Positions 4,712 through 61,573 of a DNA stretch of 64,000 nucleotides are shown here, piece after piece; the stretch's first letter is position 1; the number at the start of each line of letters is the position of its first letter. Where the stretch lies: the NCBI GenBank assembly GCA_977017575.1, contig CDRNVI010000100.1, positions 1 to 64,000 on the forward strand, in the 5' to 3' direction. The stretch is from Paramoeba atlantica. Lineage: Eukaryota > Protista > Discosea. Under the pieces are notes generated by a model. It ran no database searches, was not told the origin of the DNA, and saw only the letters and a program-made list of their open reading frames with translations. The position numbers were made by a program, and so were the translations under genes.

Positions 4712-6136
4712 ATGACCTCTTCCTCCTCCCCCCTCCCCCCTCAGGAGGCACAACTCCACCACGCGGTATCCCCCCCCCACGACAACAACAACAGTGACAC
4801 TAACGACAACACCCCGGACGACACCCACCGCAACGCCACCATCGCCTCCACCGCGGCCCACATCCTCTGCACCATGATCGGCGGCGGCCTGCTCTCCCTC
4901 CCGCTGGCCTTCGCCCAGGCCTCCCTGCTCCCCGGCATCCTCATCACCCTCCTCAACGCCCTCCTCGCCTGCCTCTCCGTCTACTTCATCTGCAAGAGCT
5001 GCGACGCCACAAAGGTCTACTCCTTCCGCGGCCTCATCCTCCGCGCCTTCCCCCACACCAACCCGAAGCTCCTGGGGATCCTCACCGAGGGCCTCATCCT
5101 TGCCTGCAACACCTTCATCCTGATGATCTACACCACCGTGATCACCGACGCGATGCCCGACCTGTGCCACGGGCTGTGGGGGGGCGGGGTGTGGTCCACC
5201 AAGTGGTTCTGGATGCTCACCTGCGGGGGGGTGTTCGTGGTGCTGAGCCCGATACGACGGCTGCACGAGCTGCTGGTGGTCTCCATCCTCGGGTTCGTCG
5301 CGATGATCGTGGTGTGCCTGGTGGCGTATGTGCATCTCGGGGAGGTGAGCGTGTTCCCGAGCGGGGGGGAGTTGGAGTGGTTTACGCTCGGGGATGGGGT
5401 TTTGCCGGCGTTCGCGGTGGTGTGTGCGGCGTATACGTTTCATATGAATATCCCGCCGTTGTATGGGGAGTTAAAGAACCCCACGACGGGACGGATGATG
5501 ACCGCGACGGTGCTGTCGGTGGCGATTGGCGCCGCGATGTATATCTCGGTAGGGGTTTGTGTGTATGTGGCGTTTGGGAAGAGTGTGGTGATGTCCGCGG
5601 CGGCGGGGGGGAACTACCTGCGGCATTTCTCGGATACCCATGGGTGGGCGAATGCGGCGCGTGGGATGATTGTGTTTCACATTATTTGCGCGTTTCCGAT
5701 TTTTGCCATCGTCGCGCGACGCTCGTGGTACATTATGATGACGGGGAACGAGCAGGAAGAAAGTTTGTGGAAGCGAGTGGTGATGGGAGTGACTTTGGTC
5801 GTGTTCGCGGTGTGCATCACGTTGGTGATTCCGGGACTGGGGGTACTGATGGCGTTCACCGGGGCCCTGTTCGGGACCTCCATTGAGTTTATCCTCCCTG
5901 CCCTGTTTTACTATCGGTTGCACGGCTCAAAGCCGTTGGAGAACAGGCACGCGGAGGAAACCACGGAAGAAAAGGCAGGCGAAGTTGCGATCCCTTGCGA
6001 GCCCGTAAAGAAGACGTCGTTGGTACAAGTCGCCGTGGGAAGTCGAGGGATGCGCTATGCTGCCATTGCCGTGGCACTTTTCGGGGTGGTGGATATGGGA
6101 GCTAGCCTTGCGGTAGTGATTAAGGATTTGTGTTAG
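4712..6136 (+). CDS. Amino acid transporter (Aa_trans/AAAP, SLC38-like)
   Basis: 474 aa, about 11 hydrophobic segments, motifs TMIGGGLLSLPLAF, AYTFHMNIPPLYGEL, GALFGTSIEFILP. Confidence 0.92.
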   Translation: MTSSSSPLPPQEAQLHHAVSPPHDNNNSDTNDNTPDDTHRNATIASTAAHILCTMIGGGLLSLPLAFAQASLLPGILITLLNALLACLSVYFICKSCDATKVYSFRGLILRAFPHTNPKLLGILTEGLILACNTFILMIYTTVITDAMPDLCHGLWGGGVWSTKWFWMLTCGGVFVVLSPIRRLHELLVVSILGFVAMIVVCLVAYVHLGEVSVFPSGGELEWFTLGDGVLPAFAVVCAAYTFHMNIPPLYGELKNPTTGRMMTATVLSVAIGAAMYISVGVCVYVAFGKSVVMSAAAGGNYLRHFSDTHGWANAARGMIVFHIICAFPIFAIVARRSWYIMMTGNEQEESLWKRVVMGVTLVVFAVCITLVIPGLGVLMAFTGALFGTSIEFILPALFYYRLHGSKPLENRHAEETTEEKAGEVAIPCEPVKKTSLVQVAVGSRGMRYAAIAVALFGVVDMGASLAVVIKDLC

Positions 6137-13347: not shown

Positions 13348-14093
13348 TTCATTATTGAGAAATTTTGAATTAATTGAAGCCATCCCCACTTAAATACCTG
13401 AGGAAAACTATCGAAGCCGTGAAGAGATTCAACTGAAAGCTTAAAAAGTTGCACTGGTTCATGACACCACTATTTATTATGAAAGTGTTATTCCCGACGC
13501 AAAGCCTACTACATTTTATTAGTGTATGGTTTGCTGTATTTATTTTTCTTTTGGAACCTGTTTTATCATTGGAGAGTATGCAGTAGGTCTGTGTAAGTCC
13601 GCGACGAGCTGTGGTACGTGGTAATCCGTGTAGATTCGTGAATGTTCGTGTAGAATTTTTCGGTATTTTTTGAGAGGGCTTAATGGCTCGGCCGCTAGGA
13701 TGATTGCATGTAGGTAAAACAGACCGAATTAGTTAAAACACGTCACTCTGAATGAAAATTTAAATAACAGCTGAAAGAATAAACCCACATAGGCACTAAT
13801 ACTAATAATCCTTGTGATGGGAATAGTCGTTGGCTTTAGCACCACTCACTCTTTACCTTATTTGGTGCCACTTATCTTTACTTTTTCATTAAATCTCTTT
13901 TACCATCTTAAACCTCTTTTTAGCTTTATAACTTGAAACATCACGCACATTGCGAGAAGCGACGTTCTTTTTGCACTTTTTTAAAGATTCCATCTTACGG
14001 GAACCTTCTTCATCTTCGACTTCAATATGTTGTGGGCCACGTGAACCAAACGTGGTTCATCATTATCTTCGGTGGGATTGAACGAATAATGTA

Positions 14094-15060
14094 CTCCCCC
14101 TGTCATTAATAATTTCTTTTTTAGGCTTTTCGTTAAATGCGGTGGTTGTTTTCAACTTAGAAGTCCCTCATGCTGCGCTCTTCGCGTTGAAAACTACCTC
14201 CGCGTTTAACGAAGAGCCCAAAAAAGAAATTTGGCCTGGAAAGGTGAAGAAAACGGAAAGATTATAGCCAAAAATAGCCGATTTTTGGGTAAAAATGGGG
14301 TGATTTTTGCGTATTTTTGCTCTCAGAGCACTAAATCTGATATTTGCGTGTGCGAAATCACTCGTAGGCGTGAATGCAAGCCTACTGAACGTGTTGGGTA
14401 GAGAATGCGACTCCAACCACGCCATTCTTTCGACATAAAAAGGCCTCTTGGGGTCCGAAAAATACTTTTTCACCTTTTTTAGTAAAAAATGGACCATTTT
14501 CGCGGGCATACCACGGCTCGAAGAAGAGATAGCTTGGGAAAACAACTGGGCGGAAAGCTAGTATAGGTCCCAAACTCAAAATACAATAGGGGAAACGATT
14601 TTTGGAAAAATAATTTTTTTACCATCTTTTTCGCCAAGTTGAATTTTTTTTCAAAATTTTTTTTCCGAAAAAATCCGAACTTGGCGGACCCGTCCTGCGG
14701 CTACGAGGGGGGGTCACCCCGGGGTACGGGGGTGGAAAATGCGCGCCAAGACCCCGGCTACCCTTTCTGCGGTTTTGTTTCGAAAAATCATTTTTACAAA
14801 AAAATTTCGTGCGGTATGCTCCCCCCCCCCTAGACCCCCCATTTTTTTCAATTTTGACCACCGGAGCCCCTTTTTATATTTTTTTCTTCTATTATATTAC
14901 TGTGTTCCTCTTTATATTTTCACTGTTTTTGTTCACCTTTTTTTCAATAATCGAGGGTAGAGCGGTAGTTTTACAACCACCGCAATGATAATGATAATCC
15001 TCAAGAATGATAATTTTTTGAGATTATTATTATCATTATCATTATTAATGGCAGGGGGAG
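14094..15060. mobile_element. Roughly 95-bp Stowaway-like MITE (TIR CTCCCCCTG(T/C)CATTAATAATGATAATGATAAT, TA flanks) split by an 873-bp insertion
   Basis: Joining 14092-14112 to 14986-15062 restores a 34-nt inverted repeat with one mismatch. Confidence 0.8.
14113..14985 (+). mobile_element. Complete non-autonomous hairpin-ended element (5' large palindrome, internal modules, 3' small hairpin), no TSD
   Basis: Starts TTTCTTTTTTAGGC, ends ACAACCACCGCAA; segments recur at 37.6, 48.8-49.4, 53.9-55.1, 57.7 and 61.0-61.6 kb. Confidence 0.8.
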
Positions 15061-15434
15061 TACTCCTCTTCTCATTAATTTATATAAACGCCATTCCTAA
15101 TTTTTCAGAAAAAAATATAGATTTTCAAAAAATTATGTTTTTGAAGAAAAAAACAGGAAAAGCTAGGATAGAGGGGAGGACACCGCAGAAAAATTTGACC
15201 CTCACTTCCGACAAGGACCTTGGATCTCACGTTCTGCAATAGCTTATCGCAGAAAAATAGCGTTTTTCCATCAGGCAAGATCATTAATCAGGACTTTTTG
15301 CCTAACCATTCTTATTAATTTCTATAAATATAAATATAAATTTTCTTTTTTGTTACAATATATAAACCCCTGGCCACCAATAAGGCACCCCCCCTTATTT
15401 TTTGCATGAGGGGGTATGGTAGGGTTATCATACC

Positions 15435-34130: not shown

Positions 34131-34313
34131 TCAGGTGTGTTTTCTGTGTTTCATGCTTCAATTCTTTGTTTAAGCCATTCACTAGGCATTATTCTGTTTA
34201 TGTAACATTGTTCCTTAGCTTTTAGAAGTTTTCTGTGGATCTTTCCATTAGATATATTTGATCTTGTAAGCATTCTTCCGAATTTTTGCGCGTTGTAATG
34301 CTCGTTTAGAAGT

Positions 34314-34410
34314 TTCGTTAAACCCGGTGGTTGTTTTCAATGGTAAGTTCACCGGCATTGTCTGCACGTTGCTCAAAGCTACCGTTGTATTTAACGAAAA
34401 GCCTAAAAAA
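34314..34410. repeat. Degenerate copy of the large family palindrome (module D)
   Basis: TTCGTTAAACCCGGTGGTTGTTTTCAA ... CTACC...TTTAACGAAAAGCCTAAAAAA. Confidence 0.7.
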
Positions 34411-37544: not shown

Positions 37545-38339
37545 GAGGGGTGACTCTGGGTGGGAGCGCCTAGGATCCCGCCTAGGATTTTTTCCAACTT
37601 TTTTTTCGTGAAAAATCCGAACTTGGCGGACCCATCCTGCGGATACCAGGGGGGGTCACCCTCACGTGGGGGTGGAAAATTTGTTCACTTTTTTTTAATA
37701 ATCGAGGGTACATCGGTAGTTAAACAACCACCGCAATACACATAACGTTAAGGACCGTCCAACCGGTGGGATTTTCTTGGTCGAATGAGCAGAGCGTTGT
37801 AGTATCGGACTGCGTCAGGGACTCTGCTAGCTCACCCGCTAAAACTCCACTATCCCAGATTGTTAGTCCGGGACGGTCCTGACTGGAGAAACGAAGTTTT
37901 TTACGCCTCCACTCCTCTGGAGATGGGGTGGGATTCGACCACAGCTTGCACGAGTGCAGTTCCACCTCCATCGAGGTTACAAGGTTGGCACGCGAGAAAA
38001 GGTGGTGCTAACAACGTATTCCTGGAGATGGACCTACCACGCCGTCTTACAACCCCGGAACGCGGTTAACGACTCCGCGAATAGGGGTTAAGCAGGAATA
38101 GTAATGGATAAATCCCTGCAGCTAGCTGGAAGTCCTTACTTCGGAAGGCTGGGGTCGCCATGCCCCATCACGGACGACAGCCCAACGCCGGACTCCCTTT
38201 CTTTCTCTTTGTCATGTTAGCCCAGCATGTTCCATCCAAGGGGCATTGAGGATTCCGGACCTCTTTGAGAAAAAATCATTTTACCAAGTCGGATCTCCGT
38301 AGAAGTTTACTGGGAGCGCCCGGGCAGGAGTCACCCCTC
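37545..38339. mobile_element. 795-bp element with 12-bp TIRs (GAGGGGTGACTC), TA flanks, carrying a truncated family B-A segment
   Basis: TA-GAGGGGTGACTC at 37543 and GAGTCACCCCTC-TA at 38328-38341; extra left-end copy near 37364; module A ends at 37737. Confidence 0.65.
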
Positions 38340-47415: not shown

Positions 47416-47680
47416 AGGGAAGAAAAAAATAATGCTGGTAAATTGTTGTTTAGTTAAATATTAGCTACTCAACTAGGTTTACGCAATTAACGAGAGTAAA
47501 AAGGAGGTGCTGTACTCATGTTGTTTATCTTGCTTGTCACGAAATATCGTCAAAAAGCGAATCACTTCGCCTTATTCATAGTAGGACAGCTACTAGTACT
47601 TTTGGTTCCAACTAAAATTCTTCTACTCTTACTAAAATTTCAGGTTTTCTAAGATTTCCTATACTGTTTTGGCGAAAAGG

Positions 47681-48256
47681 ATGGATATTTCTGTGATTTC
47701 AACTTCGCGTGCAGGTAAAGTCAGGGGCATGAAATTACCATTAGAGTACGACCTTGCCAAATTCATTAGTGAAATTGAAAATCCGTATCCCTCATGGAGT
47801 ACTGCTACGCCTGCCTGTGAATGGGATGGAGTGAAGTGCAACAATAAGGGTGATGTTACTGAAATCAATTGGAGTTCTCGACAGTTACGTGGTGTGTTGC
47901 ATTGGGAACATCTACCCCAATCACTTATTTTGTTGAACATTCATAACAACCAGCTCTGCGGCAACGTAGATTTTTCTGCGCTACCCCGGGGATTGCAGAG
48001 AATGTGGATTGGTGAAAATTTGTTTAGCGGAGAATTGCATTTTAAAGATCTTCCTCCCACGGTTACTGTTTTGAATGCGTCGAGTTGTCGTTTCAGCGGT
48101 CATGTCGACTTTTTAAGCATTCAACATTCATCTCTTGCAAAAACCGCGTCAGGTTTCGACCTACTGAATAACCCTGCTCTAAAGGGTACAGTCTCCAGAA
48201 ACGTAATTCCTCAAGATGCTTATTGGGGGATTCCCGACTCATGGATTAAAGAATAA
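47681..48256 (+). CDS. Short leucine-rich repeat protein
   Basis: AGKVRGMKLPLEYDLAKFI...CEWDGVKC cap; LRR repeats. Confidence 0.85.
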   Translation: MDISVISTSRAGKVRGMKLPLEYDLAKFISEIENPYPSWSTATPACEWDGVKCNNKGDVTEINWSSRQLRGVLHWEHLPQSLILLNIHNNQLCGNVDFSALPRGLQRMWIGENLFSGELHFKDLPPTVTVLNASSCRFSGHVDFLSIQHSSLAKTASGFDLLNNPALKGTVSRNVIPQDAYWGIPDSWIKE

Positions 48257-48803
48257 TCGCTTTGACGTTTTCACATTTGTTCAAGAGCCATTAGAGCTAG
48301 CCATGAAAAATTAGATTCGAACTGTCAGCTAAACACTGTAAGCTTGCGAAAGTAATTTTCGCGCAATTGTACAACTGGGCTGAGGTGAAGTGTATTGTAC
48401 AAGGGTAAAATGCGCATACATAATTTGCGGTAATTGTACAACTACAGTAAATGCCACTATTCTGAGAGTCGCTAAAAATGAAAATTGGGCTGTCAACGTA
48501 CAACTGGCTAAAATGAGAATGCACTTTGAAAAATGAGAATAATACATACAAGTGTGTGTCAACGTTCACTTGTATGTCAACGTTCAATTGAATTCGACAC
48601 TAAAAGCTCGGGGGGAATAAAGCTGTATAAAGCTGAATATTCATCGAAAGTGCCGCACCTTCAATGACCGTTCATCGAAGGTGCCGCACTTTCGATGAAT
48701 CATTCATCGAAGGGTTCAAAAGTGCTTTTTGAAAAAAATTGACGAAAAAACGGGAAAGAAACAATCCGGATTTTGTTGTCTAACTTTATTGTGCAACTGA
48801 AGA

Positions 48804-49410
48804 TTGTGGTGGTTGTATAACTGCCGCTCTACCCTCGATTATTGCGGTGGTTGTATAACTCCCGCTCTACCCTCGATTATTGAAAAAAAAGTGAACGAAA
48901 ACAGTGAAAATATAAATAAGAACACAGTAATAATAGAAGAAAAATATATAAAAGGGGCTCCGGTGGTCCAAAAATTTTCAAAAAAATTCGGACCCTTGGG
49001 GGGTCCAGGGGGGGGCATATCGCACGATTTTTTTTTGAAAAACTTATTTTTCGAAATAAAAGCGCAGAAAGGATAGCCGGGGTCCTGGCGCGTATTTTCC
49101 ACCCCCCTACCCGGGGGTGACCCCCCTGGTATGCGCAGGGCGGGTCCGTCAAGTTTAGATATTTTCGGAACTTTTTTGAAAAAATTTTCAACTTGACGAA
49201 AAAAATGGTAAAAAAATATTTTTCCAAAGTTGTTTCGCCTATTGTGTTTTTATAGTTTGGGACCTATTCTAGCTTTCTACGCCATTGGTTTTGCGAGGTG
49301 TCGCTTCTTGAAGCCGTGGTACGCCTCCCAATATGACCCATTTTTGACCAAAAAAAGCGAAAAAGTAATTTTCGGAACCCAAGGGGTCTTTTTGGGTCGG
49401 AACGTAATCT
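48804..49410 (-). mobile_element. 3' portion of hairpin-ended family element with duplicated terminal 37 bp
   Basis: Reverse-complement match to 14450-14985; TTG(T/C)GGTGGTTGTATAACT..CGCTCTACCCTCGATTA occurs twice at 48804 and 48842. Confidence 0.85.
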
Positions 49411-52400
49411 CTTCGTATTGATTACTGCGAGCCAGTGGACGATCCTCTTTAAAATGAGCTCTGTCCACAGGTGCACTTGGCTCAGATTGAGCCGAAGTTG
49501 CAAGTCGTTCGTTTTGAATCATTTCAGCATAGCGCTTTCGCGCATTTATGACTGAAATATTGGACCTCGTCCTTGTCCTTGTCGATGCAAGATCAACATT
49601 TTCTTCGGAGGAGTTCTCAGTAGAACCTCCTAACGCGGCCGTTAAAGCTCGCGTTTGTAGTTCGCAGTATGCATTCTGCTGAACCAATCGCTCTTCATTG
49701 ACCACTGCAGTGTTCTGCTGTGCTTCAAGAGTATCTTGAAGATGAGGTTCAACCTCGCGCACTTCAAGCTCATTTTCGTACGCAATGTTCCGTGCTAATA
49801 CTGCTTCTTCCAGAGTGCAAGCATCTTTGCGTCGATACAAATCTGCCGCGTTCTCTGTATTCTTCGAAGCATGTAAAAGCCGAAGAAAGTTGCACATTGT
49901 GTCATACTTTCCAGGCGTATTTACTTTCGCTTCATTGAGAAGCTTTTCAAACCCTTCTGGGGTCATTTCATGGCTCGGTGAGCCTTTCGTCCATGGGGAA
50001 AACAATGCCACCATGTGTTTCGCTACTCGAAGCTGGCTTCGAGCTTATGTCCCAGGTTCTTTTGAAGAACTCAATATGGGAAAACCTGGTACAGCTGGCA
50101 CAGTGTGCAAAGAGCGCAACTGTTGCTCAACAATATCTCCAGGCTCAAATTCCGGGAGGCCGTCAATGTCCTCAAAGGCGTATCTCCCATTAGCACGACG
50201 TCCGCGACGACGTCTTCGATTTGTCCCTGACTCAAAATCTTAATCACGATCGGGCTCTTCTTGAGCTAGCTCAGCTCTTTTCTTCTTTACGCTGACAATG
50301 CCTGCATAGGAATACAGGTCAAGGTCTTGAAGATCTTCGCCCATGTGCATGTAACGCACATGGAGTGGTGCAAGAACTGCACAATCATGTTCGGTGATCA
50401 TTAGAGCTCTACCATACCGTTGTCGAACTCTATATCAGAGTCTTGTGACGAATCATCGTCACTGATTTCTAGATCTCTGTGATCTGACTCACTTGAGATG
50501 TTTGCCAGGAACTTCATTACAGGTTCACATTGATCCATGTGAAGTATGGCTCATGTACTCGGAGGGTTGGCCGAGACAAAAGGCAGTTGCCATTTCGATT
50601 GAAGCTTCCGATGTGTCATGTTCGACAATTCTCTTTCGATGTGTCATGTTCGACAATTTCTGTAAAAGTAAGCGTGCCATCGGAATGTCAGTTTGCACTC
50701 TGTGCTCTGAATTCAGACCCCTTCGAAGGTGGTCATTGGCTGCGCGAAGTGCTGGTACAATGTACACAGGTGGACCAATGTCCTTGCTCATATATTTTAT
50801 GAGATATTGCATAATTTTTATGCCGGGGCCTTCGCTTCCAATGAAAACTACACATGTATTGCATCTTACGCAAGCAGTGAGTGTCTCATTGTACGGAACG
50901 ATGAGGGATCCCCGTTTAGTGTCTTGTGTCGGGTCCTGGTTATTGCGCAGAAGCACAATCAGAGACCGTTCATCAAGTACTGACCAAATGGTATCATTTT
51001 TAATCGGCCGTGTTGGAGGCTTGAGCCAGAATTCCGGTTGTCCAGATTCATCCATCTGAACCTCAACCTCTCTAACTTCCGTTTCATTTTCATGAAGTAC
51101 AGATTGTACGGATGCAATGCCATATCGGCATTTGTTCTTGTTTATATTTCCTTTCATTTTGAAACACATGGGTCTGTGACCAACGTGCTGCTGAACATCA
51201 ACAGCACATTTGGCCACATGTTCCCTTAAATAATCATCCTTTTCATCAGGAATGATATGTAGTCCTCCGCGATACATCGTCGGGCGTTGCAGGGCCGTAA
51301 AGCTCCTTACTGATCCTTTGCGCCCACTCGGGCAGATCAGAGCGCATCGTCGTACCCAAAGACTTCGCGAGACCATCGTGCTCCTTCACAATGTGAATTC
51401 ATTCGAAGACGTAGTGTGGACTAAGATTCGTCCATAGCACACTATGAAAGTGTAGCGCACCTCTTTTCTGGCATTCTACGACACCAAAAAATGCTCGAGG
51501 TCGACCAAAGAGGCCTTTAAGAACGTCACGTTCCTTCTTTACCTCATCTACATTCGACATTCCATACAATTCGGTAAGAAGAGTACGGATTTGCCGTTCG
51601 AAAATGCTGGTGGATCTGACAGGATTCCCTTGCACAAGCTCAGATCGCTTGAGAAGGTTGGCCCGCATTTCCTGCATTTTTTCGCTCTCATCATTTGTGA
51701 TGATTCTTAGAGCTAGAACGTTATCGTTCATGTTTGGACTCACTGTGGTCCAGTAAGTTGGCAGTCCGTATCGCCTGCATAAGGCGTAGATCTGACCTTG
51801 TGATGCCTTTCGCTTTGCTGGCGAAAAGGGTATCGTTTTTGCGCATATTTGCACAAATGGCAGAAACTTTGTTTCCAGAAGTTTCGCCTCGGAACTGTTT
51901 GGGTTCCTTATAGCCTGTTGTACAATGTGATAGAAAGCATCAGCATTGCAAAAATTAACGAGGCTTCTGTGCATATCTTTGTTATACTTCAGATTTTGCA
52001 CTACCGCTGATGAGACTGCACGGCGCCGAAGCACATCGTAGCAGTAAAATATGAATCCAGCATTCTTTGCAAATCGGGAATCCGATTGCTCTAGAATTGT
52101 CTTGATTTCATATGGTTCAAACGTAGAACCCTTAAAAGGGTACTTTTGCATCAGCGTCGGAAATGCTCCGAGCAAGATGTTTCCATGTCGACATACTCAT
52201 TGAGTAAACCTTCTTTTTGTTTCAGTTGCATCGCCACGGCGTGCGTAATTTGCGCACCCGCCGGCGCATTGCTTACAGGGCAGTGATCGGTTACAAAAGC
52301 TCGTGTGATCTCACCGCGAGGATCGCGATGTGACGTATCGGAAGCCACTGCTTGGGTGACCATACTGTTGATGGCGTTTTCACCCTCCTGGGAAACGGAT

Positions 52401-52639
52401 CTATCCCAAAGATGTGAGACAACGTCTCTACAATGTTGCTCGGTAACAACGTTGATTTTTCCTTCCTCTTTCAGTTGAGCATACACGTGGTTATGCTCAC
52501 AGAGGAAGTCTACCCAGGTGTTCAGAGTCTCTGATTTCACCCCGAATATGCCACTCAGATGTGCAGAACATAGTCTTTGACTACGTTTTGTTCGCCGTTC
52601 GTTGGCTATCCAAACAATTTGGATGTGCTTAATCGCCCT
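49277..52639 (-). pseudogene. Helitron-type Rep (HUH) protein in several frames, no helicase
   Basis: LGAFPTL, GLPTYWTTVSPN, FGVVECQKRGALHFHSVLW (HUH), YLIKYMSKD (catalytic Tyr motif), LQDLDLYSY, ALFSPW in correct order. Confidence 0.85.
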
Positions 52640-53785
52640 ATCTGGGGATTTTGGGGGAAAGTCCAAAACAACGACTTCGTTTTCTTTAAAGGTTCTAAAA
52701 CTGCCATTGTGGCAAGGAGCATTATCCATAGCAACCCGGGCCCCGCTATGACGCTTTAAGAAACTTAAAAAACCCCCTCTTTTTGTCATCGCGCATTTAA
52801 AAACATCTGAAGTGATCGTAATTTTCCCATTACTGTCCCTGTTTGGAAAAACATGATAAAAAATTCCATAAATAAAGCTTATACCCATCCAAACGTTCAC
52901 TCCATCCCCCCCAAACCACTTGTGCGAAGCTTTTAGAGGTGGTTTCGGGGGGTCACTTGCTCTGCAAATGTACGAGCGGCTTTCCTGTCCAAGCTGGCAA
53001 GTGAATTTTTTTTCGTCACACCAAATTATGTGACGAAGCTGTGCGACAGACCACTTCTGCATTTTCAATGCAAAGGTTAGTCGCTTGGCCTTATGAGATT
53101 CAGTTAAAAAAAGGCCTTTCGAAAAAGAACGTTGGATTATCCCTGCGTCCTTCAAAAAATATACTACAGTTGGCCTGCTGCAGGTGAAACCTCGTTTCCT
53201 GACCTCTCGAAGTATAAAATTCCAGGAGGGACAACCGCGTGTGCTTGACGTGTTGGCCGTGTCAATAATCTCGTGGCACGCATCAAGAAGCCCGGGTGTC
53301 GCCACAGTGCGTTCGCGAGGGGGTGTGGAACGTTCAACGTCCCCGGTTTCCTCAAAGCGTTTCACCCACAACTTGACAGTGCTGTGGTGGACGCCTTCTC
53401 TTCGGCAAGTGGCACTATAGGAATTTGTATTCTCGTAATCTTTTACAAGAAGCATCCTATGTGAATATTTGGTGTGCCCAGGGGAGGAGTACGCCCTATC
53501 GGAGAGAGATCCTTTGTTCTGCATAGAACGGGATCGCTTTCGCGGCATAAAACTGAGACGAAATGGAGAAAAAGCGAAAAAATGAGCAAATTTGGGAAAC
53601 ACTGCATATTTCAGAGGGGCAAAAAAACTTTAAAAAAATGCCATAAACAAAATTGCTTTCTTTTGGGGTGAAAATAGCGCAAAAACATAGAACTCTGCGA
53701 GAGCTCTCGAATGCGCTATCATTTTCCAAAATTTGAAGGGTTTTGCAATTTTTAGACCCCCCGCAGCATCTGATTTACCCCCCTG
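52640..53785 (-). mobile_element. Tc1/IS630-type element: left TIR and transposase truncated at SPD, fused in frame to Helitron sequence
   Basis: TA-CAGGGGGGTAAATC end at 53785; ATG 53548; IIWCDEKKF, VWMGIS, AMDNAPCH, DFPPKSPD then RAIKHIQ. Confidence 0.85.
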
Positions 53786-54439
53786 TATGTTTTATTTATG
53801 AATATTTTGGCTCAAATCCTTCCGTTTTCTTCAGCGTCCCTGGCCAAAGTGAAAGAAGACTGCGGGAGGGAGAGTATTCGAATACACTTAGTGATTGGCC
53901 AGTTTTCCTTTTTTAGGCTCTTCATTAAACACGGTGGTTGTTTTCAACTTAGAAGTCATTCATGCTGCATGCTTCGCGTTGAAAACTACCACCGCGTTTA
54001 ACGAAGAGCGTAAAAAAGAAAAATCTCCAAAAGATCATGAATAATCTATTTTTTTTGGGGTAAAAGCTCGATTTTTCGGCAAAAATTGCAAAATTTTACA
54101 CCGAATTTGGGCCGTTTTGGATGCCTTCCCAGTAGGGGCACGAGTCGAATCTGTCGCAAAAACATAGTAGAATGGTAGCTGAGGTCCCAAACTCCCCAAA
54201 ATACGGTTTAGGAGTCGATTGTGGAAAAATTTTATTTTTACTTTTTCTTGGATCAAATTATTTTTTTGGTCACCCTAAAAATTTCGGAAATTTTGACCGT
54301 GTCGGACCCCTCCTGCGCGTACCAGGGGGAGGTACCCCCAGGGGGGGGGGTGGAAAATTATCGCCGCGGCCTACTCTACCACTTCCCTGCGCTAGATTTT
54401 GAAAAGCAAAAAGTTCGAAAAAAAATTTCGCGCCGTATG

Positions 54440-54626
54440 CCCCCCCATGGACCCCCCCCATGGACCCCCCCCATGGACCCCCCCCATGGACCCCCCCCCA
54501 TGGACCCCCCCCATGGACCCCCCCCATGGACCCCCCCCATGGACCCCCCCCATGGACCCCCCCCATGGACCCCCCCCATGGACCCCCCCCATGGACCCCC
54601 CCCATGGACCCCCCCCATGGACCCCT
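54440..54626 (+). repeat. Minisatellite (CCCCCCCATGGA)n, about 15 copies
   Basis: 12-bp unit read directly. Confidence 0.97.
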
Positions 54627-54695
54627 CATTTTTTTGAACTTTTTTTTTCAGTTTTGGATCACCGGGGCCCCCCTTTATATTTTTTTCTTCTATTA

Positions 54696-55006
54696 CTATC
54701 CACCCCTATTTAATAGGACTCCGATTTTGGGCGAAAGGCCCTAATAAAGCGGGGGGACACGGAAAATAATATGAAGAAATCGGCGCCGCTTCGCCGCGCC
54801 TTTTTTATCGTTGTGAAACAAAGTCCTACTCCCTTTTGATACACTTTTGGTTGTTGGGGTAGATACGAAAAAAAAAATCCGCCACTTCGCGGCGCATTCG
54901 ACAATTTATTGGCACTTTCCCCGAAATCTTTTTTGGCCTTCCAGACAAAATAGCCCTATTAAAGGGGGGGGGGTGACACGTAGCCCTATTAAATAGGGGG
55001 GGATAG
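54696..55006. mobile_element. 311-bp MITE with TA flanks
   Basis: TA-CTATCCACCCCTATTTAATAGG versus CCTATTAAATAGGGGGGGATAG-TA. Confidence 0.75.
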
Positions 55007-55854
55007 TATATTAGTGTGTTCCTCATTATATTTTCACTGTTTTTGTTCACTTTTTTTTAATAATCGAGGGTAGAGCGGTAGTTATACAACCACCGCAAAT
55101 TCCTCCCTACAAGATACGGCACCCGCACATTTATAATGCATATTAAGCTGCACATTGCTAATGCATCTAGCACATTTATAATGCATATTATTTTTATCAT
55201 AGTGTTGTACACTAGAGATTTTCATTCCGGATAATCCTGGCAAAGATCAGGATCTTGTTCCGAAAGAGATTTTCCTACTCAAGCTGCTTGTGGTGGGTTC
55301 CAGGTGGGGTTCTGTCGCATAGTATATAGCCTAAATGAAGCCTGCAGTGCAGCAAGGGCAACGTTTTCACGCATTTTGCGAACGTGGTGCTTATAATCTT
55401 TTGGGAATCTCACCCCCGCTAAATAGGGGGGGAGGTGGTAGTTGTTTTGGGGGAAATGAGAGGCCGAACGCACGGAGGGGCCGGCCGGGCCACTGAGTGT
55501 GACGTTGGTGGGAAGCAATTTGCGAAGCCTCTAATGAAAAAATATAATTAAATATGCTTGTCACTGAGACAAACCACAGAAATCTCAGATACGAGGAGGG
55601 AAAAACTGCAAAACGGAGCTGTGGACGTGCTGTACTAAATGAAAAAAATCGCACATATAGTCTGGATGAAAAAATCGTACACTTGTCACTGAGACAAACC
55701 ACAGAAATCTCAAATAGGAGGAGGGAAAAACTCCAAAACGGAGCTATGGACGTGCTGTACTAAATGAAAAAAAATCGCACATACGTATCTTGAGTTTTGT
55801 TTGGGGCCCACAATAAATGAAGTAAAAAATCACTTTGAATTCTACCCGAGCATA

Positions 55855-56862
55855 CTACTGCGAATCCTGTGAGCTATCCATCAGAATACGAGGACGAAGC
55901 ATAGGAGGGGCGATAACCTTGATATTTTCGATCAATTCAATAGGCGAATTGTTCTCCAGGACATCTTTTGGTCGTTCGTTGATGGCTGCAGATGTCGTAT
56001 CAAGCGCAGCTTGCGTGACGTGGGTGAACGATGTTCGCTTACGGTAGAAATCACGAACAAGACCATTGAAATTTTCAACGCCCCCTTTCTCCCAACTTGC
56101 GTAGGGCTGACAAAAGAATGATTGACAGCCCACCGAAGCGTTCACTAGTTCGTGTTTCGCGAACTCGGTTCCATTGTCGTACGTGATAGTGAAAACTTGG
56201 AACCCCTGCAGAGCACGAGTGACCTCCTCGGCTACAACTTCTGATTTCTTGTTCTCCAACTTCCGGAGAACTCCGTAGCGGCTTTTTCTCTCCACTAAAC
56301 TGAGAAAATAGCCACTATGTTGCGCGCCTTCAATCAAGTCACACTCCCGATCTCCATATCTGGAGCGAGTATTGACGAAACCTGGGCGCTCGCTTATGTC
56401 AGTTCGATTCGGTATTTTCAGGCGATTTGTACCCCGTCGCCTTCTACCGCGACCTCCCCCCCGGCGCAGGAACTGAACTAAATTCCCTGCTCTGTCTTCC
56501 TGTTTGATGAATCCATAAACGGCTACACGAGAAATCTTTACCCCATCTTCTTTAAAGAGAGTTGTAGCGATTTGCTGTGGGCTAAATCTCTTCCCCAGCA
56601 AAGCAATCACCTTCTCTTGCACATCACCTTGTATTTTCTGGTGCTTGTGTTTCCGCGAGGAAATGGATGTGTTTGCCGCTCGTTGCGCGCGCTTCGCATT
56701 ATACTCCCCGTTACGCATACCTCTCGTGAGCTCGCGGCTCAGCGTTGACTGATTTACAGACAACTTTTCGGCTATTTCCTCCTGCGAGAAACCTTGCTGG
56801 TTGTATAGCACCTCTATTTTAGTGCGATCTTCATGATCCATACGCTTTTTTGATTGTGCCAT
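55855..56862 (-). CDS. IS30-family transposase, intact (copy 1)
   Basis: HTH_38-like N-terminus (SQEEIAEKLSVNQSTLSRELTR), FSPQQI, ERPGFVNTRSRYGDRECDLIEG, LVERKSR, YDNGTEF, PYASWEKGGVEN (DD33E), INERPK. Confidence 0.95.
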   Translation of the reverse strand: MAQSKKRMDHEDRTKIEVLYNQQGFSQEEIAEKLSVNQSTLSRELTRGMRNGEYNAKRAQRAANTSISSRKHKHQKIQGDVQEKVIALLGKRFSPQQIATTLFKEDGVKISRVAVYGFIKQEDRAGNLVQFLRRGGGRGRRRRGTNRLKIPNRTDISERPGFVNTRSRYGDRECDLIEGAQHSGYFLSLVERKSRYGVLRKLENKKSEVVAEEVTRALQGFQVFTITYDNGTEFAKHELVNASVGCQSFFCQPYASWEKGGVENFNGLVRDFYRKRTSFTHVTQAALDTTSAAINERPKDVLENNSPIELIENIKVIAPPMLRPRILMDSSQDSQ

Positions 56863-56896
56863 TGAAACAGAAAGCTGAGAGAAAAACGTAGAATTA

Positions 56897-57007
56897 TGCA
56901 TGTGAATGTGCTATATGCATGTGAATGTGCTATATGCATCTGAATGTGCTATATGCATGTGAATGTGCTATATGCATCTGAATGTGCTGTTATGCATGTG
57001 AATGTGT
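56897..57007 (-). repeat. 20-bp minisatellite (ATGCAT(G/C)TGAATGTGCTAT)n
   Basis: About 5.5 units directly upstream of IS30 copy 1. Confidence 0.95.
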
Positions 57008-57015
57008 TATATACA

Positions 57016-57160
57016 ATAAAGATACAGTTTCTGTACCTTGTTGGTACATTTTGCTAGCCCTTCCTTTCTTTTCCCGGAAACGGGCATATTCTTACTTTTA
57101 AATGCCCGTTTCCGGCTGACGGCTAGCTGGAACTGTCCCTCTTTGTCGCGGAAGTAGGGG
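57016..57160 (+). ncRNA. Spliced-leader RNA gene-like sequence, 5'-truncated (exon 57016-57043 plus GT intron)
   Basis: ATAAAGATACAGTTTCTGTACCTTGTTG|GTA matches the kinetoplastid SL core; downstream perfect 14-bp stem CCGGAAACGGGCAT/ATGCCCGTTTCCGG closed by GCTAGCC/GGCTAGC. Confidence 0.7.
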
Positions 57161-57599
57161 ACGCACTTCGCACTCTTCACCCCTCCCCGGCTCGCTCTCT
57201 TCGAGTGAGCTTTCTTCTCCCGGGAGCTATGCGCCATGGTGGCCTCCCTTGAGGACCACTGGGCGTGCTACCGCGGGAGGACACGTTGTATGCGTGTATA
57301 GGGGATGCGAACTTGCACCCCTCTCTCCCTACATGCTGTAGCGAGTGCGGCGGTAACGGACCTCCCCATGATGCATCATGATCCACGATAGATCATCTGA
57401 CAGCATGAACCCACGGCTTGACCGTGCTGCAGCATGAACCATGGCTATACGTGCTGTAGCATGACCGATGGGCGTCTCGTCTCCTACCTCGCACTACACT
57501 CTCTGTGTGACACCCGTCGTATGCGGGTCATGCGCCGATGGTATCGGCCGTCACACAGAGAGACGTATCTCTGCGCCACGAGCGTATGATCATGACCAT

Positions 57600-57720
57600 T
57601 TATGCATGTGAATGTGCCGCTTAGTATGCATTATCAATGTGCAGTAAATATGCATTTGAATGTGCTAATATGCATCTGAATGTGCTATATGCATTATAAA
57701 TGTGCCGCTTAGTATGCATT
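57600..57720 (-). repeat. 20-bp ATGCAT-type minisatellite array
   Basis: About 60 bp near-identical to 61830-61895. Confidence 0.85.
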
Positions 57721-57721
57721 A

Positions 57722-57915
57722 TTGCGGTGGTTGTAAAACTACCGCTCTACACTCGATTATTGAAAAAAAAGTGAACAAAAACAGCGAAAATATAAAGGGG
57801 AACACAGTAATATAATAGAAGAAAAAAATATAAAAGGGGGCTCCGGTGGTCCAAAACTGAAAAAAAAAAATTGAAAAAAATGGGGGGTCCATGGGGGGGG
57901 GTCCAGGGGGGGGGC
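57722..57915 (-). mobile_element. 3' end of hairpin-ended family element
   Basis: TTGCGGTGGTTGTAAAACTACCGCTCTAC...GAAAAAAAAGTGAACAAAAACAG; C-run CATGGA/CTGGA motif. Confidence 0.85.
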
Positions 57916-58320
57916 GCCCGCACATTGATAATGCATACTAAGCGGCACATTGATAATGCATATAGCACATTGATAATGCATATAGCACATTGATAATGCA
58001 TATAGCACATTGATAATGCATATAGCACATTGATAATGCATATAGCACATTGATAATGCATATAGCACATTGATAATGCATATAGGACATTGATAATGCA
58101 TATAGCACATTGATAATGCATATAGCACATTGATAATGCATACTATGCGGCACATTGATAATGCATATAGCACATTGATAATGCATATAGCACATTGATA
58201 ATGCATATAGCACATTGATAATGCATATAGCACATTGATAATGCATATAGCACATTGATAATGCATATAGCACATTCATATTGCATATAGCACATTGATA
58301 ATGCATATAGCACATTGATA
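57915..58320 (+). repeat. 20-bp minisatellite (ATAGCACATTGATAATGCAT)n, about 20 copies
   Basis: Read directly. Confidence 0.97.
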
Positions 58321-58565
58321 AGAGTGACAAAGACATCCGATTCTTATCCATAAATGTGCGTCCTTTATATACACGGGCATGTACTTATGCGCGTTACAAA
58401 AAAAAAGTGACCCCCCCTCGAAAAAAAAATCGACCCCATGAAAAAAAAGTGGAGGGGGGGAATAAGTTAAAAAGAAAAAAAGTGGAGGGGAGAAACAAGT
58501 TAAAGAGCGCTAGTATTTCATTCCTGCTCCCGGTGAGGCCCCGGAGTTGCGAGAGGCCTCCATAC

Positions 58566-58660
58566 CCCACAACTACCACCTTCCCCCCCTATTTAGCCGG
58601 GGTAGCGCGAGCGACCCCTGATAAATGGGGGGAAGGTGGTAGTTGTTTTGGGGAATATGA
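58566..58660. repeat. Module E head-to-head palindrome
   Basis: ACAACTACCACCTTCCCCCCCTATTTAGCCGGGGT-AGCGCGAGCG-ACCCCTGATAAATGGGGGGAAGGTGGTAGTTGT. Confidence 0.9.
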
Positions 58661-58704
58661 GAGGCCGAACGCACGGAGGGGCCGGCCGGGCCACTGAGTC
58701 TGAC

Positions 58705-58975
58705 GTTAGTGGGAAGCAATTTGCGAAGCTCAACTTTTCCATCATACCCGACCCCTAGAAAAGCCAAGACTTTGTTTACCCGTCTGCGAGACAAAAATGT
58801 GTGTCGTTAGTGGGAAGCAATTTGCGAAGCCCAACCTTTCCATCATACCCAACCCCTAGAAAAGCCAAGACCTTGTTTACGCGTCTGCAAGACAAAAATG
58901 TGTGTCGTTAGTGGGAAGCAATTTGCGTAGCCCAATTTTTCCATCATACCCAATCCCTTACAAAGCCAAGACGAC
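58705..58975 (+). repeat. 101-bp tandem repeat, about 2.7 copies, downstream of IS30 copy 2
   Basis: GTTAGTGGGAAGCAATTTGCG at 58705, 58806 and 58907; an analogous 125-bp duplication (55557, 55682) lies downstream of copy 1. Confidence 0.9.
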
Positions 58976-59198
58976 TGAAGCCCAACTTTTCTGACTGAGC
59001 CCAACTGTTCCACCATACCCAACCCGTAATAAAGCCAAGACCTTTTGAAGCCCATACACGTAAAGAAAACAACATTCAATGCAAGAACGCACACGAAATG
59101 CAAATATCCAATACAAACAAGGCCGCGCAGTTTCATAGGAAATTAGTGTTTTATGACACAATATTTGAAGTAAGAAGCCCACGCACACGAAAAGAGGT

Positions 59199-60179
59199 TT
59201 AAGATTCCTGCGAGCTGTCCAAGAGAATTTGCGGTCGAATTTTCCGTAAGTTTTGCACAAACTCAGATGGGGACTGGTCTTGGAGCACCACTTTCGGTCG
59301 AGCATTGATATTGCTGGATACGGAATCAAGGTCTGCTTGGGATATATTACTGAAAGGATGAGACTTTGGGTAGAAATCTCTGACGACGCCATTGAAATTT
59401 TCGACACCACCCTTTTCCCAGCTCGCGTACGGTTTACAAAAGTACGACGAGCAATTAAGGGAACGATTTACGCTCTCGTGCTTCGCGAATTGCGTTCCAT
59501 TATCATATGTGAGTGTCCGTACCAAAAAGCCTTGAAGGGCGCTGGTGATAGTCTCTGCTACAAGAGTCGATTTCTTGCATGATATCTTTTTCAGGATCCC
59601 GAAACAACTTTTGCGCTCAACCAGGGTAAGAAAGTGGCGTGTACCTTCTATTAGATCACACTCCCAATCACCGTATCGTTCCCGATCGTTAACAATGCTG
59701 GGCCGCATATCAATATCTGTACGATTAGGGATGCTGGTACGATTAGTTCCACGACGACGGCGTTGTCCACGAATTCCCCCCCGACGGAGGCAACTCTCCA
59801 AGTTTTGACTCTTATTCCGACTAATAAAACCATAAATTGCCTTCCGGGAAATGCTCACACCTTCTTTACGCAAAGTAACAGATATCTGTTGAGGGCTAAA
59901 GCGCCGACGTAACAGAGATATGACACTCTCTTTGATGTCTCCTTCAATTTTGCTTGCACGGGACTTCCGTTTACTCATTGCTTGGTTGAGTGTTCGTTCA
60001 GCCCGCTTCGCGTTGTACACACCATCCCGATCTCCACGTGCCAGTTCTCGACTAAAAGACGACTGATTTACTTTCAGTTTTGAGGCAATTTGTGCTTGCG
60101 AAAAGTTTTCTTGATTGTGGAGAACCTCAATAAGTTTACGATCTTCTGAATTAATACGTTTTCTAGATGTTTGACACAT
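59199..60179 (-). CDS. IS30-family transposase, intact (copy 2)
   Basis: 326 aa; same motif set: FSPQQI, RPSIVNDRERYGDWECDLIEG, LVERKS, YDNGTQF, PYASWEKGGVEN, INARPK. Confidence 0.95.
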   Translation of the reverse strand: MCQTSRKRINSEDRKLIEVLHNQENFSQAQIASKLKVNQSSFSRELARGDRDGVYNAKRAERTLNQAMSKRKSRASKIEGDIKESVISLLRRRFSPQQISVTLRKEGVSISRKAIYGFISRNKSQNLESCLRRGGIRGQRRRRGTNRTSIPNRTDIDMRPSIVNDRERYGDWECDLIEGTRHFLTLVERKSCFGILKKISCKKSTLVAETITSALQGFLVRTLTYDNGTQFAKHESVNRSLNCSSYFCKPYASWEKGGVENFNGVVRDFYPKSHPFSNISQADLDSVSSNINARPKVVLQDQSPSEFVQNLRKIRPQILLDSSQES

Positions 60180-60959: not shown

Positions 60960-61573
60960 CCCCTACACTAGCTTTCTCCGCAGTTGTTTTCGCAAGGTAT
61001 CACTTCTTCGAACCGTGGTGCGCCCCTCAAAATGACCCATTTTTGACTAAAAATATTTTTCGGACCTAAAGGGGCATTTTTGTGTCGAAAGAATGGTATG
61101 GTTGGAGTCGCATTCTCTACCGAATACGTTCGGTAGGTATTCCATTCATGCCTACGAGTGATGTCCCACGCGCAAATGTCGGATTTAGTGCTCTGAGAGC
61201 AAAAATACGCGAAAATCACCCCATTTTTACCCGAAATTCGGCTATTTTTTAATAGTTCACGTTTTGAAATTTAGCCGAGGGGCGGCTATATATTTGCCTG
61301 CTGGCCCTTCAGGGCACATAATTTTCTCAAATTATGATGTAGTATTCTCTAATTGCATGGAGGGGGGTGTTTACTCGTTTGTTATATTCTTGTTAGGTTG
61401 TTATTTTGTTACGTTTTAAGTTTTGTGCTATAATCTTTCCGTTTTCCAGGCCAAATTTTCTTTTTTAGGCTCTTCGTTAAACGCGGCGGTAGTTTTCAAC
61501 TCGGAGAGCGTAGCATGAGTGACTTCTAAGTTGAAAACAACCACCGCGTTTAACGAAGAGCCTAAAAAAGAAA
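60960..61573 (-). mobile_element. 5' portion (modules D and C) of hairpin-ended family element
   Basis: Reverse-complement match to 14113-14560; palindrome with 44-bp arms at 61447-61573. Confidence 0.85.

Follow-up and report, generated by a model that had tools for sequence, protein, structure and literature searches.

The question posed by this locus is what kind of sequence occupies positions 14113–14985 of the window (the whole 64,000-nt stretch of DNA analysed here) and by what means it came to lie there. A preliminary description had noted that its excision restores the inverted repeat of a MITE and had proposed a Helentron- or HINE-like rolling-circle family, with mobilization by IS30 enzymes as the alternative. 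We find that the sequence belongs to a real, well-defined and recently active family of Helitron2 type, which is a new family of a known group and not a new kind of element. From comparisons of sequence across the assembly we regard it as quite probable that the family is a non-autonomous Helitron2-type (HLE2) rolling-circle transposon, most likely mobilized in trans by the RepHel protein of a 12.3–12.9 kb partner.

The stretch 14113–14985 is a discrete element within a small MITE. Its left flank ends ...CATTAATAA (also given as ...GTACTCCCCCTGTCATTAATAA), the element itself reads TTTCTTTTTTAGG...ACAACCACCGCAA, and the right flank opens with TGATAATGATAAT. The left part of the host MITE arm (14091–14112) was split off by the insertion and, with the bases from 14986 onward, gives the arm as it stands at 15032–15058, the joined flanks being the reverse complement of that other arm; the remainder of the MITE, including its intact right arm, was placed at 14986–15063 from the joined-flank comparison and the genome-wide pattern of the arm. 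A search of the whole genome with a 27-nt arm pattern, allowing at most one mismatch, returned 32 occurrences of the uninterrupted arm (15 forward and 17 reverse) on many contigs and none of the reversed control pattern; intact arms are frequently paired in inverted orientation with about 65–85 bp between them. A small MITE family thus exists, with the intact arm as the empty site, and the restoration of the MITE inverted repeat on excision is confirmed.

The focal copy measures 873 bp (minus strand; 5' end at 14985 and 3' end at 14113 in rolling-circle orientation) and matches an 892-bp family consensus, built from 24 full-length copies, over its full length at 87.5% identity, so that it is an old or divergent member. 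Its ends are those of 39 full-length copies, 86.6–98.9% identical to the consensus, a count that applies to the fetched sequence. The family is about 0.9 kb long and encodes no protein; in the 45.7-Mb assembly a search turned up 1615 first-look candidates, of which more than 40 match over the full length and have the identical pair of ends, and the family explains a large share of the repeats in the assembly.

Could so abundant a sequence be a satellite-like or segmentally duplicated repeat and not a mobile one? Head-to-tail arrays with unit spacings of 0, 1, 12, 19 and 44 bp, found on contigs C73, C41, C43, C103 and C71, speak for such a reading, as does a 99% identical twin of the focal copy in the same flanks on contig C67. 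Dozens of dispersed copies, however, have identical ends and unrelated flanks, and the insertion sites include a MITE, other family copies and a Helitron ORF, so that an immobile repeat is extremely unlikely. The C67 twin is a duplicated or allelic region, with no second insertion. Over long stretches C67 (fetched locus L032; L numbers denote such loci) is 98–99.5% identical to 47659–59702 of the window, without 53272–58396 and 48647–48822, and we read it as a haplotig or recent segmental duplicate with structural differences; comparison of the window with C67 yielded no clean empty site, the differences being large structural ones. Within other family copies, insertions cluster in the TTCTATTATATTAC stretch at about consensus 800–812 (L013:1500, L017:2377 and L028:2404; 54695 in the window). 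This stretch has received at least three independent family insertions and one unrelated small element, and looks like a local hot spot.

The two ends of the element differ in kind. At one, the terminus TTGCGG... carries a 9-bp hairpin (14962–14985, minus strand; −8.0 kcal/mol, z −4.95), the folds being −6.2 kcal/mol on the plus and −8.0 kcal/mol on the minus strand (z −3.2 and −5.0 against shuffled sequence), and a subterminal 10-nt repeat, GCGGTGGTTG, begins 2 nt from the tip. At the other lies a 117-nt palindrome (14113–14229, minus strand) with a stem of about 45 bp, a loop of about 28 nt and a fold of −36.8 to −37.6 kcal/mol (z about −9 to −9.7); the inverted partner of the repeat, CAACCACCGC, sits in its distal arm about 26 nt from the tip, and the 5' stem sequence recurs, inverted, inside it. 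The long palindrome, the short hairpin and an inverted core common to both ends (GCGGTGGTTG/AAAACTACC), all seen in the preliminary description, are thus present; its 5' and 3' labels have to be exchanged. Considering the direction of the partner's ORF, and given a subterminal repeat only 2 nt inside one tip, with its inverse in a stem–loop some 26 nt inside the other, the sharp end with the short hairpin is the 5' end and the long palindrome the 3' end.

The sharp end, TTGCGGTGGTTGT... (the originally described 3' end, reverse-complemented), is constant among 55 non-redundant ends and is preceded by A in 52 of them; in the original orientation T adjoins five of the window's six sharp ends, as had been reported (14985, 37736, 48804, 48842 and 57722, with 55098 as the exception). 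The 3' palindrome is kept in all copies with a variable outer stop point: 3–12 bases of TAAAAAAGAAA(A) extend beyond the GAGCC of the arm, the commonest stops being GAAA and GAAAA, and T follows. The termini of the family read TTGCGG... and ...AAAAAAGAAA, and canonical CTRR ends are indeed absent. In three copies the outer palindrome arm is lengthened by self-complementary bases (at least 35 at L026:1470–1620, 21 at L045:2500–2643 and, with one mismatch, at L014:2262–2378), giving a much longer fold-back. Against Rfam the palindrome gave only sub-threshold microRNA-precursor matches (36 bits versus a gathering score of 135), which reflect the long hairpin, and the whole window gave no match at the gathering score. 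A palindrome at 34305–34410 of the window is about 72% similar to the family's terminal palindrome, matches it in both orientations and stands apart from any other family sequence, so that a related family may end here.

Once copies had been collected, their ends compared and empty sites rebuilt, no variable-sequence target-site duplication emerged: in 26 independent copies the flanking k-mers agree only through the fixed A and T bases. Three-base flanks match at the ends as given in 2 of the 26, and at the best offset, which is the AAT reading, in 9; the 3-bp AAT duplication offered earlier as an alternative was rejected on this count. The net duplication is zero at the MITE and at the paralogous site of L003 and L004, and five bases at L028 provide further empty-site agreement. 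A copy inside the Helitron ORF of C109 interrupts the host sequence GGCAA|TGGCG with no duplication, its left junction alone being clean; its sharp-end junction (L046:3380–3403) contains 23 bp of templated filler from both neighbouring host sequences, together with a 398-bp host deletion. The nested copies at L013 and L017 have 33 and 5 extra AT-rich bases, respectively, at the 5' junction, in a variable TAT-rich stretch of the host sequence, and are ambiguous as empty sites.

These borders bear on whether the family moves by cut-and-paste, leaving a fixed 2-bp AT or 3-bp AAT duplication, through a DDE enzyme such as the IS30-like transposases at 55.9–60.2 kb. IS30 elements generate duplications of 2–3 bp, a length that suits this proposal, and an element T...A that is bordered by A and T is open to the reading AT...AT; with the element so placed, a fixed 2-bp AT duplication would give an identical sequence. 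Moreover, IS30 unit 2 lies between two pieces of the family that point the same way, namely the 5'-terminal 193 bp of a copy (57722–57914, plus strand, 97% identical to the consensus) and the 3' part of a copy (60962–61573, plus strand, consensus 446 to 1 with a 171-bp internal insertion and the palindrome end at 61457–61573). The two fragments are, however, non-contiguous in the family (446 versus 702), and ATGCAT arrays of the IS30 unit abut 57722–57914 on both sides, which looks like a disrupted family copy. Between the two family tips there is no inverted-repeat relation, AAT suits too few copies, the stop points at the hairpin end scatter over about 10 nt, as would not be expected of DDE excision, and the family ends are borne by a Rep-helicase element and not by a DDE element. 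We consider cut-and-paste movement of this kind very improbable. An IS30-family DDE transposon as such was ruled out, given the tips, the lack of a variable target-site duplication, a full-length member that encodes RepHel and the IS30 units' own array ends; IS30 mobilization is accordingly unsupported by tips, duplication and coding content alike.

For the rolling-circle reading, the window itself had seemed to supply a Rep: one at 49.3–52.6 kb had been described as running into a family end in the same orientation. This link did not survive. The ORFs at 49.3–53.6 kb bear Helitron_like_N (51399–52175) and DUF6570, and the region is composite, its Helitron part being 52636–49403 only and 53788–52640 a separate Tc1-like repeat. 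The Helitron part (49403–52636, minus strand) is a degenerate internal fragment of a giant RepHel gene and an incomplete element; it matches only 1501–4722 of L033, inside a 2965-aa ORF of which it spans about residues 1420–2490. The adjoining family fragment (48804–49402, plus strand) runs from consensus 892 to 307 in rolling-circle polarity, which is opposite to that of the Rep fragment, and the junction at 49402/49403 is missing from six 95%-identical Helitron copies. The neighbourhood of the two in the window is an accident of nesting and truncation, and for annotation it is relevant that the Rep ORFs of the window are dead fragments. The Tc1-like repeat (52640–53788, about 1.15 kb) is inserted in the Helitron fragment and has elsewhere several 98% copies and an 83% subfamily; a chimeric 483-aa ORF (52151–53602) runs from the HTH domains of the repeat into Helitron DUF6570 sequence.

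The window holds several further family pieces. In the fragment at 48804–49402 the 38-bp 5' terminus is tandemly doubled (48804–48879, starting at 48804 and 48842), as it is in L048 near 4809–4847, with successive TTGCGG/TTGTGG starts that give two 5' ends. A variant copy at 53905–55098 (minus strand) has a different internal segment and a nested small element (about 54696–55003), and in this copy only, the C-rich 13-bp family unit (CCCCCCCATGGAC-like) has grown into a tandem run of about 14 at 54440–54625. Internal tandem repeats, named in the preliminary description as typical of such derivatives, are present there, while the focal copy contains none. A short deleted remnant at 37588–37736 (minus strand) keeps the sharp 5' terminus.

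The search for Rep-helicase elements between family ends succeeded on other contigs of the same genome, where elements of 12.3–12.9 kb carry an intact RepHel gene and the family termini. In C43 an intact RepHel ORF of 2965 aa extends from L043:3913 to L033:6138 (C43:152912–161809 in the merged fetched loci). It comprises DUF6570 (PF20209, E 2.7e-11, residues 373–498 of the 1988-aa part), Helitron_like_N (Rep) and PIF1 domains, with the motifs HFH and, as Walker A, GPGTGKS; no Exo_endo_phos or other nuclease family was found in either part of the ORF. At its N terminus an 89-aa cysteine/histidine repeat occurs about 4.4 times in tandem, the coding DNA being a 267-bp array, and C41 is 535 bp shorter over the span of the ORF, as the loss of two 267-bp units would explain. 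A 259-aa RRM_1 ORF (L044:5929–6708, minus strand) follows RepHel immediately within the element. Plant Helitrons carry RPA-like genes in this place, and the RRM_1 ORF may be a captured nucleic-acid-binding gene. Two Helitron copies (L047:6770–7156 on C34, and the same in C82) carry, shortly behind the start of RepHel, a 386-bp insertion of another, retroposon-like element, which is flanked by a 10-bp target duplication, AAACGACGAG.

Family sequence lies on both sides of the partner's ORF. Upstream of RepHel stand two truncated units of the family (consensus 892 to 73 and 850 to 44) that share the polarity of the ORF and are followed by the leader, an arrangement that recurs in C43, C52, C41, C47 and C38. 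In the 3' untranslated region, family 204 to 90 is present in diverged form together with 31 nt of an arm, and downstream of it comes a family-like 793 to 1 with the full palindrome at its end, across a junction common to eight copies; the conserved internal junctions of the partner are found in at least eight copies on different contigs. The partner starts exactly at TTGCGG..., with upstream flanks that differ between C43, C52 and C41 (the last by coordinates only), and ends at the palindrome, with downstream flanks that differ between C41 and C82, the 5' and 3' ends having been read on different copies. Over the first 70 nt it shows no difference from the family consensus, and the 3' palindrome is almost identical as well. 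By coordinates, a complete copy lies at C41:229598–241907 (12.3 kb) and a second at C43:151113 to about 163973; further autonomous copies are on C47, C38, C19 and C52. In intermediate short derivatives, for example on C87, 108 bp of Helitron leader have survived between the ends of the family, and the short family looks, from this comparison, like what remained after loss of the coding region between directly repeated terminal segments of the partner. A full-length member thus encodes RepHel and not a DDE enzyme.

The main remaining rival is coincidental nesting, in which a Helitron inserted itself into copies of the family, segmental duplication multiplied the composite and some other enzyme moves the short family. 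Family copies do crowd all Helitron copies, in both orientations; more than 10 kb are common to C43 and C52; and the partner's internal family-like segments are only 83–92% identical to the abundant consensus. What nesting leaves unexplained is that the composite begins exactly at the sharp family terminus with differing upstream flanks in C43, C52 and C41 and stops exactly at the palindrome with differing downstream flanks in C41 and C82, that the terminal 70 nt are identical, that the Helitron's own 3' untranslated region holds the diverged 204 to 90, and that short derivatives keep the 108 bp of leader between family ends. We therefore hold coincidental nesting to be distinctly unlikely, and argue for the partner and the short family sharing one set of termini.

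Considering a potential mechanism for such a Helitron2-type family, we suggest that Rep would nick the coding strand next to the 5' hairpin, at A|TTGCGG, and that the PIF1-type helicase would displace the strand 5' to 3', strand transfer stopping, imprecisely, within the A-run in or just after the 3' palindrome. The element ends would then be joined, giving a junction ...GAAA(A)TTGCGG..., which is the junction found in zero-spacer arrays, and the strand would be inserted at A|T in AT-rich DNA. In this scheme the nick site, the direction and the circle are what we infer, whereas the ends, flanks, hairpins, arrays and shared termini were observed directly; neither a polymorphic empty site nor a transposition intermediate was seen. 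Truncated family units recur with breakpoints at consensus 44 and 73, which are the two edges of the palindrome loop (C43, C52, C41, C71 and C87; L043:3008 and 3784). Given these truncations, the long palindrome, the ragged stops and the arms extended by 21–35 or more self-complementary bases, the 3' end may alternatively be hairpin-dependent, with transfer stopping at, or being primed from, the folded-back 3' hairpin and with no sequence-specific cut; we rate this as a doubtful possibility. To our knowledge, no hairpin-dependent step of 3'-end formation has been described for Helitron-like elements.

As to the host, a core motif which we take to be that of a spliced leader of kinetoplastid type, CAGTTTCTGTAC, occurs at 57025 and 44723 of the window; the kinetoplastid-like host that it presumably points to is a lead and not taxonomic proof. 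We know of no reconstitution so far of transposition in the Helitron2-type group, for which the varied 5' and 3' ends of the present family form a natural collection. In the literature examined for our comparison, Helitron2-type elements are stated to be absent from the host's protist lineage. The known host range is widened by the young Helitron2-type system found here, which has an intact giant RepHel gene, more than 1000 candidate matches and copies whose identity to the consensus reaches 98.9%.

Placed among known systems, the family agrees with HLE2 in most respects. DUF6570 has been proposed as an HLE2 marker, and Helitron2/HLE2 elements have short inverted repeats and a 3' stem–loop (PMC11417382). 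Here a Rep (HUH) and a PIF1-type helicase are encoded by the 2965-aa ORF between the termini of the short copies; DUF6570 is part of this transposase and is also found in the window fragment. The (sub)terminal inverted repeats are short, with a 10-nt core, GCGGTGGTTG/CAACCACCGC, that is slightly below the published range of about 12–16 nt, and the 3' hairpin takes the form of a 117-nt palindrome that greatly exceeds published ones in length. The lack of target-site duplication holds for variable duplications. HLE2 elements are reported to insert between T and T; the flanks here are A (52 of 55) and T, and a one-base shift of the borders yields T|T only in those copies, about half of the total, that have T as the second 3' flank base. 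Two other groups were rejected: a strict-sense Helentron, since no AP-endonuclease domain is fused to RepHel, and a canonical Helitron (HLE1), there being no 5'-TC and no 3'-CTRR with a short hairpin 10–12 nt before the 3' end. The Helentron- or HINE-like family of the preliminary description thus stands as regards hairpin ends, the lack of a variable duplication and a RepHel partner, and falls as regards a Helentron in the strict sense, the partner having no endonuclease.

With canonical Helitrons (HLE1; Helraiser, PDB 7LCC) the system shares Rep and a PIF1-type helicase, the lack of target-site duplication, an A and a T in the flanks, a 3' hairpin that presumably serves as terminator, and tandem arrays with multiple termini. 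It differs from them in missing 5'-TC and 3'-CTRR and in having inverted subterminal repeats and DUF6570, reported as HLE2-specific, and RepHel matches Helraiser weakly and in the helicase only (E 2.7e-7). HINE/DINE-1 elements, which are non-autonomous Helentrons, have a subTIR 2–4 nt from the 5' end, a 3' palindrome, a variable terminal homopolymer, no target-site duplication and, in some copies, tandem repeats (PMC4067079). Our family resembles them in all these features, in the placing of the second subTIR tens of nt from the 3' end, in the palindromic subTIRs of some of their families, in the variable homopolymer count and the microsatellite or tandem repeats of some copies, and in a copy number far above that of the partner. 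Unlike theirs, its partner is without an AP-endonuclease domain, its palindrome is much longer, and its variable 3' run is of A beside T, in contrast to T runs in a TT target.

FoHeli1 and FoHeli2 of Fusarium oxysporum have hairpins at both ends, with the 5' repeat recurring inside the 3' hairpin (PMC5148889). The family departs from FoHeli1/FoHeli2 in that its 117-nt palindrome reaches the very terminus, where they have a short hairpin 30–50 bp inside; in its termini, TTGCGG...GAAA as against TCAG...ATTTT; in its flanks, A|T as against TNAT|T; in a partner of 12–13 kb with a 2965-aa ORF as against 5–6 kb; and in its host, a protist with a presumed spliced leader of kinetoplastid type. It is like them in carrying terminal hairpins at both ends, in a 5' repeat that returns, inverted, in the 3' hairpin some tens of nt before the 3' end, in a homopolymer-like 3' tail, and in having non-autonomous derivatives, joined ends, tandem or composite copies and no target-site duplication.
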